NCBI GenBank assembly: GCA_964270895.1
Contig: OZ185447.1
Origin: Podarcis filfolensis
Taxonomy: Eukaryota
Direction: 5' to 3' (one strand)
DNA: 64,000 bases
Shown here: positions 22,305 through 52,620 of the stretch, in pieces
How the letters are laid out: each line of letters opens with the position of its first letter
Numbering within the stretch: position 1 is the first letter of the stretch
Notes under the pieces: model-generated
What the model was told of the DNA's origin: nothing
Database searches by the model: none
The model's input: the letters and a program-made list of their open reading frames with translations, nothing else
Position numbers and translations under genes: made by a program

Positions 22305-45052
<22,748 letters not shown>

Positions 45053-47120
45053 TTTAGTTCTCTCTTGCTCTTTGCCTCTCGTCCCAACAGCTTCGTTTGC
45101 GGTTGCAGTGCTGGCTTCCTGCTCCAGTGCATGCTCGGAACCGGCCTCATTCTGGTCAGCCAGCCACTGGGACGAGCCGTCCAGCTCCTGGGTTCCTTGG
45201 CAGCCCAGCCTGCGCTCGGGACTGCCTGTCTCAGAATTATCTAGAGATTCATGAAGAGGAATCAGTCGCATTGTGATCAGAGCCAGACTGAAAAGAACTG
45301 AAAGACACCCACTCAAGAACAAGCTAAAGGAAGATTTTCAGAGGAAGTGAAATTAAACGTCAAAATGACATTAGCATGCCCTCTGCCTACAATTTTACTT
45401 TCCTTTAACACAAAGTAAAGCACTAAAAATTAAAGAAGGAAAGTAATGCACCTTAAAAGCAGCTATTAACTAAAGAGCATAAATGTAAACCAAACAGTTC
45501 CCAGCTGATCAAATCTCATTTCTCACTAGGTGCTTTTCAAAAATGAAGCTGTGAGTATAAATATGATTTGATTAATGATTACAGTGAAGGGAGGAGGGGT
45601 TCTTTTTTCCCTTTTTGTTGCTGTTGCCAAAATCAGGGGAGCCCCAGAAAAATTTGCTTGGGAGCCGGATCAGGCCCCCCCAAACTGGGGGTTAGCCTCT
45701 CCCAATTTACGATATACAAGAGATCTGGTGGCAGAACCCAGTAGAAAATTAATATATCCAACACAGTAGCTATCAAAAACACAACAGCATTAGAAAATCT
45801 CCGTTGCTAAGTTTGTACACACAAGCAAACATTTTCTGTTACAGAATAAATGTTTGGGTAATGTGAAAAAATGTTTTCTCTCAAAGTTTGCATTTAAAAC
45901 TTTAATATTTAGACACAAAAGATGTAAACCCTGCCTACAAGTAGAGGATTCCCCTATCTTCCTCCACTGGATACATATTCTACTGTTTAGTACTAAATGC
46001 CTAGACTTTCCAAAAATTTCCAGGGGAGCTATGAACAGATACTGTAAATTTTATTTCATTCCTTTGAGCTGCTTTTTATATCCCTCCATCATATCTCAAC
46101 AAGCAAATTAAGTTTAGTTGTGGCCTAGCCAGATTCCAGTACATAATAAATTCTGGCCCATCAATATAGATGTTGGTGACAGAAAAAGCATTTTGAAAAG
46201 AAAATAAATCCAACACTGAGCTCAGAAAAACAGCCAAAGATTTAGATTTGCTTGATGTTCCTGCTTAAAACCCTGTTGCCAATTCCCCAATGGTATTCAG
46301 TTTCACCTGTACCTGCGTGAGCTGCGAACTCCTCTTGCTTGTCAGGCTGAACTTCCAGGGTTTCGCTTTCCTGGGGAATACTACACCTGAAAAAAGATGG
46401 AACCGTTAGTCCAGAGAACATTTTGTGTGTGCGCGCGTGTGGTAGATGCACAGCAACCTATTCCTTTAGGTAAGGATCATTCAAACTTGCTCTTGGGACC
46501 CTGAACGACTCTGCCAAAGGGTAGATCAAACCCTGTCTCTCTTTTATTGTTACGCAGACAGCATGGGAATAGCCGGCCCACGGGTTGCGGTGGAGAGTTT
46601 TACTGTATGCACCAGCTACCAAATTCAAGCCTATGAAAAGAGGCAGGAACCTGTTTGGGGTGCGGTTTGGTGAACCACTAGAATTATCGCACTTTCCCAT
46701 CCACTTTACGGATTCTGAGTTGTCTAGCAGTGTCCTTTTCACTCACGCCCATGCCTAGGTATCCAGAGCCCAAAATCTTCTCAGTATCTGGGGCTACCCG
46801 GCTGGATGAGTGGAGTATAAATAATAAATTATTTTTATTTTGCTTCCTATGTACCCACCTTTGCTTCAGAAGCGTCAATATTCTGCACGTCACCCTCATA
46901 TCATTATCCCAGGGAAGTTTACTTCCCTTCTTGGCTTCATTCTTTTGAGAGAGATCTACAACCCATTCATCCTGCAAGCTGAGATTTTGCAACTCAACTC
47001 TATTGCTATAGCGTCCTATTAACTCTCTGCTTCTATAGCTCAATTTTGTCCCTAGCTCATAAATAACCCACTATCTCCCAAACCTTTTGTTCCTTCCCTC
47101 TCACTCCACACTTAACCCAG

Positions 47121-50100
47121 TTACCTTGTAATTCTACCTCCCTGGCCTGACCCTGCTGCCTCCATATCCTGCTTCAGCCTCTCAGCCAGCCCCTGCCCTT
47201 CTACTTCCAATCCTGACACAGCCTCACCCTCCACATGCTGTGCCAGCCTCAGCGCCCTCTGTTCAACCTGCCCCAGAATGGAACTAGTCTTAACAGAACT
47301 CAATGGAATAGTATCAATGGGACTTTCAGCCACCTTCACTCCCTTCACATGCAAACCAGTTGGGCCTTCGCCCCACATTGCCCGCCTCATGGCATTGTAC
47401 CTTTTAATTGCAATTCCCATTACCCCATCCCGCCAATCTTTCAACTCTTGCTTTCCTGTTAACAGGCCTGGACTTCGTCTCTCTGCCATAGAGTCAGGAC
47501 TGTCTGCTTTTGAGCCACGAACTGTTACAGAGAGTCGAGACACTGTCTGCTTAGATCCCAACACGTCCTTCAGCCAGTGTACGTTGGCTGATTGGCTTGT
47601 AAGCCCATACACCCTTCTTCCCATCCCAGACACTGGTGGCTCAGGACTTGGTCCTGCTGACTTTACTGCTCCCTGACCTGTCACCATCATGTTTATTCGT
47701 TCTTTTATTCCAGCCCGCAATGGCCCTAAAGCAAGTCCATGCCCAGACCCAAGGCCTGCAGTCCAACCAGAACCTGGTCGTATTGTCGAATAATCTTGTG
47801 TCAGTGGCCTACCAAGCCATGGCAAGTACATTCCTTCTGGATGTTGCCTTGCTCTGTCATCAACATCCTTGGCCAATATCTCCAACTCCTTAACTATCTG
47901 TTCCTGCCTCGGTGGTTCTGCTGGGGTCTGATCAGATTCCTTTCCTGCCTCCTCCATCACAGGAAGCTGCTGAAAGCTCTCTATCCTGTTATCTGCCTCA
48001 GAGAAACATGACATCCCTTCCCGTCCAATTCTGTACCCCATCATAACCACCGGCTCACCTACTTTAACCCTAATTGCACGAGACCTCAATTCAGCTGATC
48101 GTGTCTCCCTCTGATCTAATTCACCCTTTCCCAGTTGCGTACGAGCCTCCTTAATCATTCCCTTCTGCTGAGCCATTGCTGTTAAACTGGTCACAATCAA
48201 CCCTGGAGCCCTGTGCTCCAGCACTCCACGACGGAATCCACATGAGCGTGTTGCCCCTTGATGTGGTACCAGTATTGGCCCTTGCCGTAATCCTGCCAAC
48301 CCTGAAATTATTTTCCCCTTCAACTTGCGACGTTCCTCTTGACTTCCTATGGCAGTGCGCTGTGACAAATGTGATGACAGCACTGAGGAACCTGATTTAT
48401 TCAATTCAGCCACCTTCAGGCTTGGTTCCACTTGACCTTGGGCCAGGTTCGTATCAGATGCCAACCAGGTGACTCTGGTATCTTCTTCACTTGGTTTTGC
48501 CCTTTGACTCAATATCCCCTCCCTGGAAGGCACGCCTGCCATCTCCTGAGTTGGTCCTCCCAACTGTTCTTCTACTTCTGGGCTCCAAACTAGTGTCTTC
48601 TCCTGAGAGGGTACCTTTCTTCCCATAGTACCTTGATGCTGCTCAGTCAACGCAATCTCACCTACACTTGTAACCTCCACTACTGGTCCCTGAAATGGTT
48701 CCACCAGCACCTTAGTATCACTCCGATCGCTGAATAATGCCTCTCTTATTTCTCGAGATTCCTCCCTAGTAACCCTCTCAGTTGAACCCAACTGCTTGGC
48801 TTCTCCCTGATCAAGTCCTACTTGCTCTTTTGTCTCCCTTTGTTCTGGTTCTGCTAGCTCTCCAACTTTCTCCTGACTAGTTCCTAGTTTCACCTCTTCT
48901 CCAGGCCCCATCTCCTGACTTTGCACAAGTTCTTCCTCCAAGCCTCCAGTTTCTTCTTGTGCTCCAGCTACTCTCACTGGTGCTCCCACCGCCTCCTCCC
49001 TTCTTTCTTCCTGACCCACTGCACTCATCTTTTCTGTTTCCCTCTGAGCTGCTCCTATCACTTGCTCAGCCACATCAAGAGCCACGTGTATCATATCCTC
49101 CTTGACAGTCACCTCCTCAGTCTCTACCTGACTTGTCACTACCAAACCCTCCCCCTCAATAAATGCTACATCTCTCTTTGAAGTTGCCACCTCTGCCTCC
49201 CTCTTATCTTCCCCTTCCTCCACTGTGGCTGCCATACTGCCAATCTCACCCTGACTTATCCCAGCCAAATCCTCAACCTGCTTTTGATCTTCTACTGATT
49301 CCACATCTTTCTCTGCAGCCACCTCTTCTGCCTGCTTTTCATCTATTCTTGGTGATCCCTGATCCAGTGTTGATGCCATACTTTCTTTTTCAGTCTTACC
49401 CTCAACTTCTCCCTGACTTGCCACCACCAAATGCTCAGCCTTCTCCTCAGCTGCACCTGCCTCTTCCTCAGCAATCACCAACTCTGACCCCCTCAGATCT
49501 TCTTGTAGGAATTCAGCTTTAACTTGATCCATTGATGGTGCCACCTCCTCTGCTTCTCCCCTGCTTGACTTCACCAAGTCTTCAACTTCCCCCCAACCCT
49601 CTGATGATGCCAAATCTCCTTCCACAATCATGCTTTCAGCCTCTCTCTGATCTACTCCAGATACCCTGTCTTCCCTTTCAATTTCCTCACCAAGTCCCTC
49701 CTCACCTGGTCCAACTGTCATCTCCGCCTCCCTCTTACCCAAAACTGGTTCCTCCTCTCCAGTCAACACCTCAATTTCCCCCTGACCTAGTCCTACCAAC
49801 TCCTCCTCACCCCTTGCTAATATTGCATCTTCCTCTGCAGTCACTTCCTCTAGCTCTCTCTCATTTACATCTGGCACCTTCTCAGTTTCCTCATAGTCAA
49901 TTGCAGGTGCCACATCCTCTTCCTTTCCAGTGACCTCTAGGATCTCCCCTTGACCCAGTCCTGACAACTCCTCCATTTCTCCATGATTATCTGTTGATTC
50001 GCCTTCTTTGTCACTCTCTCCCACCTCCACCGACTCTGGCATCTTTTCAGCCTCCCCCACTGCCTCATCTTCCCTGACAGTTGCCTCAGCTTCCCTCTCT

Positions 50101-50819
50101 TCCAGTTCCATCAACTTTTCCTGTTCATCTCCCTTTTCAACCCTCTCTCCAGAATCTACACGGTCCTCTTCTACCAAATCCTCTTCTTTCCCGTGGTCCG
50201 GCCCTGCCAACTCAGTCCAATTTCCCCCCATTTCTAGAACCATTTCACCCTCTCCAAGCAGTGTTTCTTCCTCATGAATAAATTCCTGAGTCTCCTGCTG
50301 ATCCATTCCTTTTCCAGTCTTCCCCTCAGCTTCCCTCTCATCTGGGCTCCCAAAAACACTGGTTTCCTCCTGATTTGGTTCTCTTGACTCTTCAACTTCT
50401 TCTTTCTCTCTATTACTCTTAAGCTGAAATTCCTCAAGAATCACTGTCTCCAACTCTTCTGCTTTTCTCAGATCTGGTTCAATAATTTCCTCAGCCTCTT
50501 CCCCAGACATTCCTAATGCCACTTCTCTTTTCAGTGCATCCTCAGCCACCCCCCTATCCAGTTCTGCTAAGGGTCCAAATGTATCCTGGTCTGGTTCCAT
50601 CAACTCTCCAGTAGTTGGTGCTTCATGTTCTTTTTCAGCCTCCTCTTCTGCCTCTGAGTCTTTAGCCTCTCCCTGTCCCACACCTGTCTCTGGAAGCAAT
50701 CCAGTTATCTTTCTCTCTGCCTCATTGGGAGGTCCTTCTACTGTGGTCTCCTCATTCACTACAGCCTCCTCTCCCTTCCTATCATCCTGAGCTTTAGCCT
50801 GCCCCTCCTCAGGCTCCAT
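47121..50819 (-). CDS. Uncharacterised 1232-codon Glu-rich ORF inside the SRCAP 5' region; candidate giant alternative SRCAP coding exon or nested intronless gene
   Basis: 3699-nt stop-free frame. ATG at 50819 in strong Kozak context (GTCATGG) with an in-frame TGA six codons upstream. Ends ACA AG|GTAACT (donor overlapping the TAA). AATAAA at 46839-46834. No recognisable domain. Confidence 0.75.
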   Translation of the reverse strand: MEPEEGQAKAQDDRKGEEAVVNEETTVEGPPNEAERKITGLLPETGVGQGEAKDSEAEEEAEKEHEAPTTGELMEPDQDTFGPLAELDRGVAEDALKREVALGMSGEEAEEIIEPDLRKAEELETVILEEFQLKSNREKEEVEESREPNQEETSVFGSPDEREAEGKTGKGMDQQETQEFIHEEETLLGEGEMVLEMGGNWTELAGPDHGKEEDLVEEDRVDSGERVEKGDEQEKLMELEEREAEATVREDEAVGEAEKMPESVEVGESDKEGESTDNHGEMEELSGLGQGEILEVTGKEEDVAPAIDYEETEKVPDVNERELEEVTAEEDAILARGEEELVGLGQGEIEVLTGEEEPVLGKREAEMTVGPGEEGLGEEIEREDRVSGVDQREAESMIVEGDLASSEGWGEVEDLVKSSRGEAEEVAPSMDQVKAEFLQEDLRGSELVIAEEEAGAAEEKAEHLVVASQGEVEGKTEKESMASTLDQGSPRIDEKQAEEVAAEKDVESVEDQKQVEDLAGISQGEIGSMAATVEEGEDKREAEVATSKRDVAFIEGEGLVVTSQVETEEVTVKEDMIHVALDVAEQVIGAAQRETEKMSAVGQEERREEAVGAPVRVAGAQEETGGLEEELVQSQEMGPGEEVKLGTSQEKVGELAEPEQRETKEQVGLDQGEAKQLGSTERVTREESREIREALFSDRSDTKVLVEPFQGPVVEVTSVGEIALTEQHQGTMGRKVPSQEKTLVWSPEVEEQLGGPTQEMAGVPSREGILSQRAKPSEEDTRVTWLASDTNLAQGQVEPSLKVAELNKSGSSVLSSHLSQRTAIGSQEERRKLKGKIISGLAGLRQGPILVPHQGATRSCGFRRGVLEHRAPGLIVTSLTAMAQQKGMIKEARTQLGKGELDQRETRSAELRSRAIRVKVGEPVVMMGYRIGREGMSCFSEADNRIESFQQLPVMEEAGKESDQTPAEPPRQEQIVKELEILAKDVDDRARQHPEGMYLPWLGRPLTQDYSTIRPGSGWTAGLGSGHGLALGPLRAGIKERINMMVTGQGAVKSAGPSPEPPVSGMGRRVYGLTSQSANVHWLKDVLGSKQTVSRLSVTVRGSKADSPDSMAERRSPGLLTGKQELKDWRDGVMGIAIKRYNAMRRAMWGEGPTGLHVKGVKVAESPIDTIPLSSVKTSSILGQVEQRALRLAQHVEGEAVSGLEVEGQGLAERLKQDMEAAGSGQGGRITR

Positions 50820-51229
50820 GACCACATTAACCTTTCACTTATTTCTGGTCTGGTTTCTTGCAAAACTTTGATGGTGCTAAGTAACTGCAACCCCCTCCCA
50901 ACTTTTCAAGTATTATCACTAGCCACTCAAACGCTAGAGCAGTGCAACTGCTCAAGTCCCAGATGATACCCTAATACACTTTGAACTTGCCACCCTTTCT
51001 CAGAACCCTTGCGCCCCGCTAAAAATCAATCCTTGTATCCGCAATCCTGTATTTATTCATTCATTGCACCCTAATCGCAAGCGATTCCCCCTCTGACGCC
51101 TAGTTTCTTTCTTTTTCAGCACAAGTTCGATGCCCTTTGATTTCCCCCCACCCTTTAACCCCTTTGTCACACTTTCCCTCCCACCTTTTCCCTTTGACCC
51201 CTTGACCCCGCCCCGGTTTTCCCCAAAAC

Positions 51230-52620
51230 CCTCCCTCCCTCCCTCGCCCTCCCTCCCTAGTCCCCCGAGAATCCCCGCTCGCCCCTCCCCCACCCGCTGA
51301 GGAGTAGGCGGCCGTTGGTTGGTCGGTTTCGCGGCGCGCGAGTAAACGAGGTGACGGGGGGGGGGGAGGAGGGCGATAGGTGAAGTAATAATAGGCCAGG
51401 ATTGAGAGCGGCCGTTGGCTGGGTAAGCGCGTGCGGCTCCCACATTGGCTCCTTTCTCTTATTTCCCGCCCCGCCACACTCCATTAGTGCGCCCTCTATA
51501 GGCAGGGGAGCGAAATGACCGACGGGAGAGAGGAAGGGACGGGGGAGGTAAAAGGCCGCGCGCGCGCGACCACCGGCAACCAGGCACACGCGCGCGCTCT
51601 TATCTGTTTCCTCACTTTTCCCTCCCGACTCGAAGCAGAGACTTGCACCCTTCCAGGGAGGTGGGTGTGAGCGAGCGGAGTAGAGCCCCGGCCGGTCCGC
51701 CATCTTACCTGGGTGGGAGGGGGGAGGAGTGAGGAGGGAGGGGAGGCGCCTCCTGCCCCGCCTCCTCCTGCTGCCGCCTCAGCCCCAGCGCCGCCGCCTC
51801 GGCCGGAGAGAATCCGCCGCCATCCGCGGCCCCCAGGCCTCTCCCGCGCGACTTCTCCCTTTGCGCGGCCTTCGCCGGTGCTCCTCGGCACGTCGCCCAC
51901 CCCTCCCACCCGGATGCTGATCCCTAACCAGGCCCCGCCGAGCCAGACCCGACCCGCCGCGGCAAAATGGCGGCCGCCACCACCAAGCGCCAGGGCCAGC
52001 CCCTCCCTCCTCCCACCGCTCCCTCCACCCGCCGGCCTCGGCGCTTAAGTCTCGCGAGAGCTCGGGTAACGCGAAGGAGGGTGTGCGTGCGTGGAGAAAG
52101 AGAAAAGAAACTCAGACCCAAAGTGTCTCACAGGCGCGTCGCGCGGGAGGACGGCGTCCCGGCGAGAGGCCGCGGGCCAGAAGAATTGCGGAAGACGGCG
52201 CTCTTCTCCCTCACAATCAGATAGAGCGGGATGTGGGACTGCGAGCCCGCGGGGCGAGGGAAAGGCCATCGCGAGTGAAGGGCATGCTGGGAAATGGAGT
52301 CCTGGGGGATGCTGGGGGTTGGAGTCTCCCTCTCTCTTTCGGACGGAGGGAGGGAGGACTCGATTTGTCTTTCCTCAAAAATTCTTCCAATTGTTCGCTG
52401 GGCGGGCTGGCGCGACTATTCGAAGGTGCTCCAAACAAGATGCACATCGCGCTTATGAATGGGAAGAGGCAGCTTTGGCTCGTGAAAACATGCACTTCCC
52501 CTAGGACTACTCGCAGATACTTCGGACGCGACTTTGAAAGTCAGGAAAGTTTCAATGAATATTGTTTACGTGGGAGGGTGCTCGCACCGTCGCGCGAAAC
52601 GAGGTTGACAAGACGTAGTT
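51230..52620. promoter_or_regulatory. SRCAP CpG-island promoter; non-coding exon 1 donor CAG|gtaaga after 51709
   Basis: CpG-dense. YY1-type motifs at 51697-51706 and 51964-51973, TCTCGCGAGA palindrome 52050-52059, CCAAT at 51448-51444 (minus). Confidence 0.8.

Follow-up and report, generated by a model that had tools for sequence, protein, structure and literature searches.

We describe an open reading frame (ORF) of 1232 codons on the minus strand of a 64,000-nucleotide (nt) stretch of the Podarcis filfolensis genome (assembly GCA_964270895.1, contig OZ185447.1; hereafter the window), which lies on the same strand as SRCAP and ends ~0.7 kilobases (kb) 5′ of SRCAP exon 2. The ORF is a genuine coding sequence. 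On balance, we favour the reading that it is a stand-alone protein gene, apparently restricted to squamates, with a single coding exon nested in SRCAP intron 1. The gene probably shares the SRCAP promoter region, and its exon is probably composite, with the stop codon inside a conserved 5′ splice-site motif. The protein is already known, in that it is listed in RefSeq as an uncharacterised stand-alone product. An earlier note on this DNA had proposed that the ORF is spliced in frame onto SRCAP exon 3 through the junction 47125>45287. The coding ORF, the conserved splice-site motif at its end and the possibility of an in-frame continuation into SRCAP all held, whereas that junction did not.

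The description of the ORF in the earlier note was reproduced in full when the sequence was read again (ATG at 50819, 1232 codons, TAA inside AG/GTAACT and an exon end at 47125 in phase 2, where the slash marks the exon boundary). The last sense codon is AGG (47126-47124), followed directly by the TAA, and a GTG two codons 5′ of the ATG, at 50825, would give 1234 codons. The sense strand of the ORF is purine-rich (A 32%, G 36%, T 18%), and composition gives a stop probability of 0.06 per codon, at which 1232 open codons would arise by chance with a probability of ~1e-33. The other two frames of the interval contain 88 and 95 stops. Tandem repeats were excluded as the cause of ORF length, no arrays being found in the ORF. 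An open frame of 1000-1363 codons is kept in ~10 squamates, including lacertids, snakes and iguanians, and the ratio of non-synonymous to synonymous substitution rates (dN/dS) is 0.6-0.7 among lacertids and ~0.4 against Thamnophis, the latter with saturated dS. It is because of this negligible chance of openness, the long frame kept across squamates and the dN/dS of 0.4-0.7 that we call the ORF coding.

Potential orthologues were sought with ORF residues 700-1232 as the query, and all identities given here refer to that region. The search returned 11 proteins of 882-1363 amino acids (aa), squamate without exception. Identity to the ORF protein was highest for a Podarcis lilfordi hypothetical protein (99%), P. 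muralis LOC114583697 (XP_028560880, 96%) and Zootoca LOC132593046 (92%), and was 46-54% for proteins from Candoia (LOC134495752), Anolis sagrei, Notechis (LOC113421704), Pseudonaja (LOC113443587), Micrurus, Thamnophis and Phrynocephalus. An exhaustive HMMER profile search covering 1.84 billion cluster representatives matched 7 proteins, all squamate-like and the longest 1363 aa, and found no relatives beyond squamates. Judged by these searches, the family looks squamate-restricted. RefSeq lists the orthologue in at least 7 species as a separate “uncharacterized LOC” protein of 1000-1363 aa. Several orthologues carry other names, namely titin homolog (Thamnophis), AKAP12-like (Anolis sagrei), RP1L1 and enolase-phosphatase. 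We rejected these as borrowed through Glu-rich low complexity, with no support from Pfam. A literature search yielded no paper naming LOC114583697 and none pairing SRCAP with squamates.

Full-length orthologues begin with a MEPEEG-like start and stop at the orthologous position (..GGRITR, ..GEKFSR, ..GEKISR or ..KKGER), and five Pseudonaja and three Notechis RefSeq isoforms likewise stop at the orthologous TAA. With the same MEPEEG start, the same ..GGRITR end (in P. muralis) and the same position between FBRS and SRCAP, the ORF shows no difference of substance from LOC114583697 and its squamate orthologues. The elapid isoforms X3 and X5, which end ..SLRADV, were considered as products of splicing to a downstream exon and rejected, their ends being traced to a ~100-nt junction inside the ORF. 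This junction (L005:12640-12745 in Notechis, L006:12725-12830 in Pseudonaja) has no GT-AG borders and puts the frame out of register; either an alignment artefact or a rare variant is the probable explanation. The ORF tail of Phrynocephalus forsythii (L007:12971-13250) contains a frameshift after ..RYNAMR, and the SRCAP model of that genome's authors begins within the tail (13116). An assembly error, lineage-specific gene decay or a gene-model merge could account for this anomaly.

The N-terminal ~700 aa of the encoded protein are hyper-acidic, with 22-28% Glu and a net charge of ~-150. The conserved part of the protein is its C-terminal ~400 aa, which have a net charge of +15, hence basic, and contain the invariant motifs GLAGLRQG, MGYRIGRE-MSC, WLGRP, SGWTAG, IKERI and LKDWRDGVMG-A (alignment A4). 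A Pfam scan of the ORF protein gave no family at E-values up to 1. AlphaFold2, run on the C-terminal 410 aa with an 8-sequence alignment, returned a mean predicted local distance difference test score (pLDDT) of 34.5 and a predicted template modelling score of 0.15. The low pLDDT suggests disorder, or at least a structure that is unpredictable. The protein evolves fast and is probably intrinsically disordered. Going by composition, its acidic region could be a binding site for basic proteins, histones among them.

In six assemblies FBRS (Auts2 family), the LOC gene and SRCAP follow one another in this order on one strand, each called as a separate gene. A CpG island with a GC content of 0.62-0.71 lies 5′ of the ORF and contains a conserved block, which its sequence leads us to read as the non-coding exon 1 of SRCAP. 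Podarcis and elapids share 86% identity over the block, which has at its end the donor CCCACCCAG/GTAAGATGGCGG; this donor scores 11.1 and is invariant in 5 species. In 5 species the block sits ~0.8-1.3 kb 5′ of the ORF ATG (~0.9 kb in the window), and because it does so the ORF is placed within SRCAP intron 1. No conserved splice acceptor was found upstream of the ORF ATG; therefore the ORF exon would be either a first exon or a long extension of exon 1.

The stand-alone reading is preferred because the RefSeq products all stop at the orthologous TAA, because FBRS, the LOC gene and SRCAP are called as three separate genes and because no fusion occurs in the databases searched. It is preferred also because Phrynocephalus keeps the TAA without the GT of the donor, and because 5 species share an invariant exon 1 and exon-1 donor 5′ of the ORF. 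With regard to fusions, no match to the ORF profile longer than 1363 aa, and hence no fused ORF-SRCAP protein, was found among the 1.84 billion representatives. The longest RefSeq squamate SRCAP products (3320-3479 aa) are too short to contain the ORF, and RefSeq in 7 species keeps the ORF gene and SRCAP apart while modelling several internal isoforms. A word-index search found no spliced contigs, in that no fragments of 226-717 aa spanned the ORF end. The Logan and ENA contigs that contain the ORF (L008, L009, L010) are colinear with the genome, intron sequence included, and are therefore uninformative on splicing.

If the gene does stand alone, its transcription would be initiated at the shared SRCAP promoter or shortly past it, with the exon-1 donor left unused. 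Translation would begin at the MEPEEG ATG, which is conserved and in good Kozak context, and would end at the TAA whenever the overlapping 5′ splice site is not used, so that the ORF exon would serve as a terminal or composite exon. A scan for polyadenylation (poly(A)) hexamers found them between the ORF stop and exon 2 in each species. Among these, the lacertid AATAAA ~280 nt past the ORF stop is a possible 3′ end, and it is not conserved in snakes.

Several observations count against a stand-alone gene. The RefSeq models are predictions. In the ORF-to-exon-2 interval, lizards and snakes share no poly(A) hexamer at a corresponding position. CAAGGTAACTGG, the motif at the ORF end, shows stronger conservation than the flanks do, and a bare stop codon would not demand such constraint. 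The path from the ORF through exon 2 to acceptor 45240 keeps the frame and meets no stop before the SRCAP ATG in 8/8 species. Lastly, the RefSeq SRCAP models of P. muralis and Candoia start in an exon 167-219 nt past the ORF stop (‘exon 1b’), and therefore transcription through the ORF-exon 2 interval does join SRCAP.

The ORF end reads ACA AG/GTAACTGG. This is a consensus-like donor, and bases +2 to +4 of its intron side form the stop. CAAGGTAACTGG is conserved in 7/8 lineages, being identical in Podarcis, Zootoca, an iguanian-like ENA contig, Candoia, Thamnophis, Notechis, Pseudonaja and a Logan snake contig, whereas its coding and non-coding flanks are only ~65% identical. Phrynocephalus is the only species to differ at the DNA level, reading AGA TAA CGTG, with the GT lost and the TAA kept. 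The Micrurus protein, which was seen as protein alone, ends ..GEKISM at the same position rather than ..ISR, from which we infer a weakened -1 position of the donor in that species. We take the Micrurus entry to be derived from a venom-gland transcriptome, and if so, at least some Micrurus transcripts read through the donor. The earlier note had held that an ORF ending exactly at a phase-matched donor bears the mark of a real coding exon. The donor is indeed conserved, but a crude scoring matrix finds 12 donor-like sites scoring at least 7.5 between 50819 and 47125. Because such strings are common in this purine-rich ORF, the evidential weight of the donor lies in its conservation and not in its presence. 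That conservation suggests that some transcripts may be spliced on to SRCAP exon 2.

With this in mind, the ORF might instead serve SRCAP as an alternative 5′ coding exon of great length, joined from 47125 to exon 2 and from there to acceptor 45240. The product would consist of the 1232 ORF residues, a linker of 87 residues (CSIPQESETLEVQ...KEQERTK) and full-length SRCAP, ~4.7 thousand aa in all. The last Arg of the ORF would be re-formed at the junction, and the stand-alone protein would be an unspliced by-product. The 2 nt of the ORF exon, the 74 nt of exon 2 and the 188-nt exon-3 leader together make 264 nt, or 88 codons. Besides the donor conserved in 7/8 lineages and the path open in 8/8 species, this explanation can call on the low probability from composition (~0.036) that a given frame of the 262 nt of exon 2 and leader would be open, on the complete lack of indels in these 262 nt across 8 species and on the fact that RefSeq treats the leader as coding where an upstream ATG is available. 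However, a control frame that is unable to enter SRCAP is equally stop-free in every species, and ~2.5 stop-creating substitutions are expected for either leader frame; the openness of the linker therefore does not discriminate, and we rejected it as evidence of coding. Variable sites in exon 2 and the leader fall 21/11/16 on codon positions 1/2/3, the ratio of non-synonymous to synonymous codon changes is ~3:1 and the core is invariant at would-be third positions too, so this stretch appears to be under constraint at the nucleotide level, as in an untranslated region (UTR) or RNA element, rather than as coding sequence. Furthermore, no fused model exists in the 7 RefSeq-annotated squamates and no fused protein among the cluster representatives, Phrynocephalus has lost the donor while retaining the stop, and no conserved acceptor is found 5′ of the ORF. 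We therefore regard a long 5′ coding exon of SRCAP as possible, though unlikely. The fuller version of the idea, namely that a giant SRCAP isoform is made through 47125, exon 2 and 45240, that the ‘ultraconserved 5′ UTR’ doubles as coding sequence and that three donors choose the product, is somewhat less likely again.

The exon 1b models bear on the same path. In P. muralis (3479 aa) and in Candoia (3421 aa), the longest SRCAP coding sequence of RefSeq begins in exon 1b and, by way of exon 2 and the 45240-type acceptor, leads in frame to MQSSP, with ~101-102 residues added ahead of it. In Candoia this is the sole acceptor available, whereas in P. muralis a route that skips exon 2 and enters at 45287 is also in frame. 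The Candoia product less its 102-codon extension is 3319 aa, compared with 3320-3326 aa in other snakes, and this arithmetic is consistent with use of acceptor 45240. Colubrid and elapid snakes have lost the exon-1b donor, which lacertids, Candoia, Phrynocephalus and the ENA contig retain. The peptide CSIPQESETLEVQPDK would be common to the fusion product and to SRCAP initiated in exon 1b.

The exact model of the earlier note, a ~4740-aa lineage-specific isoform (...GGRITSLALITMRLIP...MQSSP) made by joining 47125 directly to 45287 with exon 2 skipped, fares much worse. The join does read ...GGRITSLALITMRLIP... and is open for 78 codons to MQSSP, acceptor 45287 has a good polypyrimidine tract, and the alternative join 47125>45297 yields the short tail ...SSFQSGSDHNATDSSS and a stop, as the note had stated. 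The frame is open, however, in two Podarcis sequences only, those of the window and of P. muralis. In Zootoca a CGA>TGA change within the extra stretch places a stop six codons past the acceptor (...SLALITM, then TGA). A stop of this kind in a close relative is what the note itself had named as grounds for refuting the junction. In snakes the junction is impossible, the acceptor being absent and an in-frame stop lying 10 nt 5′ of the conserved exon-3 acceptor, as seen in Thamnophis and Candoia. Exon 2, which the model omits, is conserved, and its acceptor is at least as good as that at 45287; including it with acceptor 45287 shifts the frame, with a stop after ...AAHAVWL. Conservation of exon 3 between lizards and snakes starts sharply at 45240, inside the 45287 start, and exon 3 is equally long in 8 species. 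The databases searched gave no support for a 47125>45287 product. We consider the model highly improbable, and its open junction would seem to be a Podarcis-specific coincidence. The SRCAP 5′ gene structure given in the note is thus corrected in two respects, in that exon 2 exists and that the conserved exon-3 acceptor is 45240 and not 45287.

It could also be that splicing here is regulatory or unproductive. Transcripts of the ORF would then be joined to SRCAP, from 46859 or 47125, mainly as alternative 5′ leaders, with the ORF acting as a giant upstream ORF (uORF) or as a target of nonsense-mediated decay that diverts SRCAP promoter output, and with the protein secondary. In its favour, exon 2 can be reached from any of three alternative donors (51709, 47125, 46859), exon 1b is where RefSeq SRCAP models start, constraint on the protein is weak at a dN/dS of 0.6-0.7 and no fold is predicted for it. 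Yet to hold a frame of at least 1000 codons open since the lacertid-snake split requires selection on the translated product, and the C-terminal 400 aa contain many invariant motifs. This explanation is improbable, though less so than the direct 47125>45287 junction.

Composite exons are among the known arrangements closest to the ORF. In such exons polyadenylation further downstream is in competition with a 5′ splice site, and reading through a phase-2 GTAA donor provides the stop; the choice between secreted and membrane immunoglobulin mu is the textbook case. The ORF resembles them in running exactly to AG/GTAA, in the conservation of its donor and in the lacertid AATAAA downstream. It differs in being known here from sequence alone and in having no poly(A) signal conserved between lizards and snakes. 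It is also similar to nested orphan genes, having squamate-only homologues, evolving fast, being predicted to be disordered and lying wholly in SRCAP intron 1; unlike typical orphan genes, it is unusually long (1000-1363 aa), and it is on the same strand as its host and near enough to share the promoter. In relation to SRCAP itself, the Swr1-type H2A.Z-exchange ATPase of the INO80 family, the ORF lies in the same transcription unit and on the same strand and is phase-compatible with exons 2 and 3. However, it encodes no HSA, SNF2 or helicase domain and is a separate gene in every annotated genome examined.

If it stands alone, this is an unusually long lineage-restricted gene that has been conserved from the lacertid-snake split or earlier. 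Its host, in whose promoter-proximal intron it sits, is an essential chromatin remodeller. As such it would be a useful, though not surprising, case for the origin and persistence of orphan genes inside hosts. The most interesting feature is the conserved donor at the stop together with the universally in-frame route to SRCAP. Were a fusion real, squamates would attach a giant acidic tail to their H2A.Z loader, and the donors 51709, 47125 and 46859 would decide between ordinary SRCAP, giant SRCAP and a free acidic protein.

Features of the ORF and of the 5′ part of SRCAP in the window, in window coordinates. A slash marks the boundary between exon and intron.
Feature	Position	Strand	Details
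Coding sequence of the apparently squamate-restricted protein	47124..50819	-	1232 codons; ATG 50819
5′ splice-site motif CAAG/GTAACTGG	47117..47128	-	TAA (47123-47121) inside the motif; last exon base 47125, phase 2
SRCAP putative non-coding exon 1	51709..52080 (5′ end approximate)	-	in CpG island; donor CAG/GTAAGATGGCGG after 51709
‘Exon 1b’	46859..46899 (counted from its ATG)	-	ATG 46899; donor AAAG/GTGGGT after 46859, phase 2
SNORA30/SNORA37-like H/ACA small nucleolar RNA candidate	46531..46666	-	27.9 bits, E 0.037, full model length
SRCAP exon 2	46313..46386	-	74 nt; exon and both splice sites conserved
Extra exon-3 stretch if acceptor 45287 were used	45241..45287	-	47 nt; acceptor ttcttttcag/T, lacertid-specific
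SRCAP exon 3	44996..45240	-	acceptor ctctag/ATAATTCTGAG; 188-nt leader; ATG 45052 (MQSSP); donor GAG/GTGAGG after 44996

Within the exon-3 leader, ~100 nt (45141-45238, minus strand) are nearly invariant in lacertids, snakes and an agamid, would-be third codon positions included. This block is a candidate for an ultraconserved 5′ UTR element. Few blocks between the ORF and exon 2 are as well conserved among lacertids, snakes and agamids as the small nucleolar RNA candidate. Its score falls short of the Rfam gathering score (90 bits), and its ACA box is conserved in snakes. Human SNORA30 presumably sits in a SRCAP intron, and SNORA30 and SRCAP are listed together in four papers.

Exon 1 was also considered as the source of an extended SRCAP and rejected, since the frame is open for ~65 codons into the exon without an in-frame ATG. 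The ATG that the exon does contain belongs to a short uORF (51779-51823, minus strand; ATG...TGA, encoding MAADSLRPRRRRWG). Snakes retain the uORF with two changes, one synonymous and the other Leu>Ile, and in Phrynocephalus it carries an in-frame insertion of 6 nt. The exon-1 donor CAG/GTAAGATGGCGG (51700-51712, minus strand) overlaps the motif AAGATGGCGGC, which we take to be a YY1 consensus and regard as a candidate site. A further motif, GCCGCCATTTTG, ~250 nt upstream of the exon-1 donor, is also invariant.

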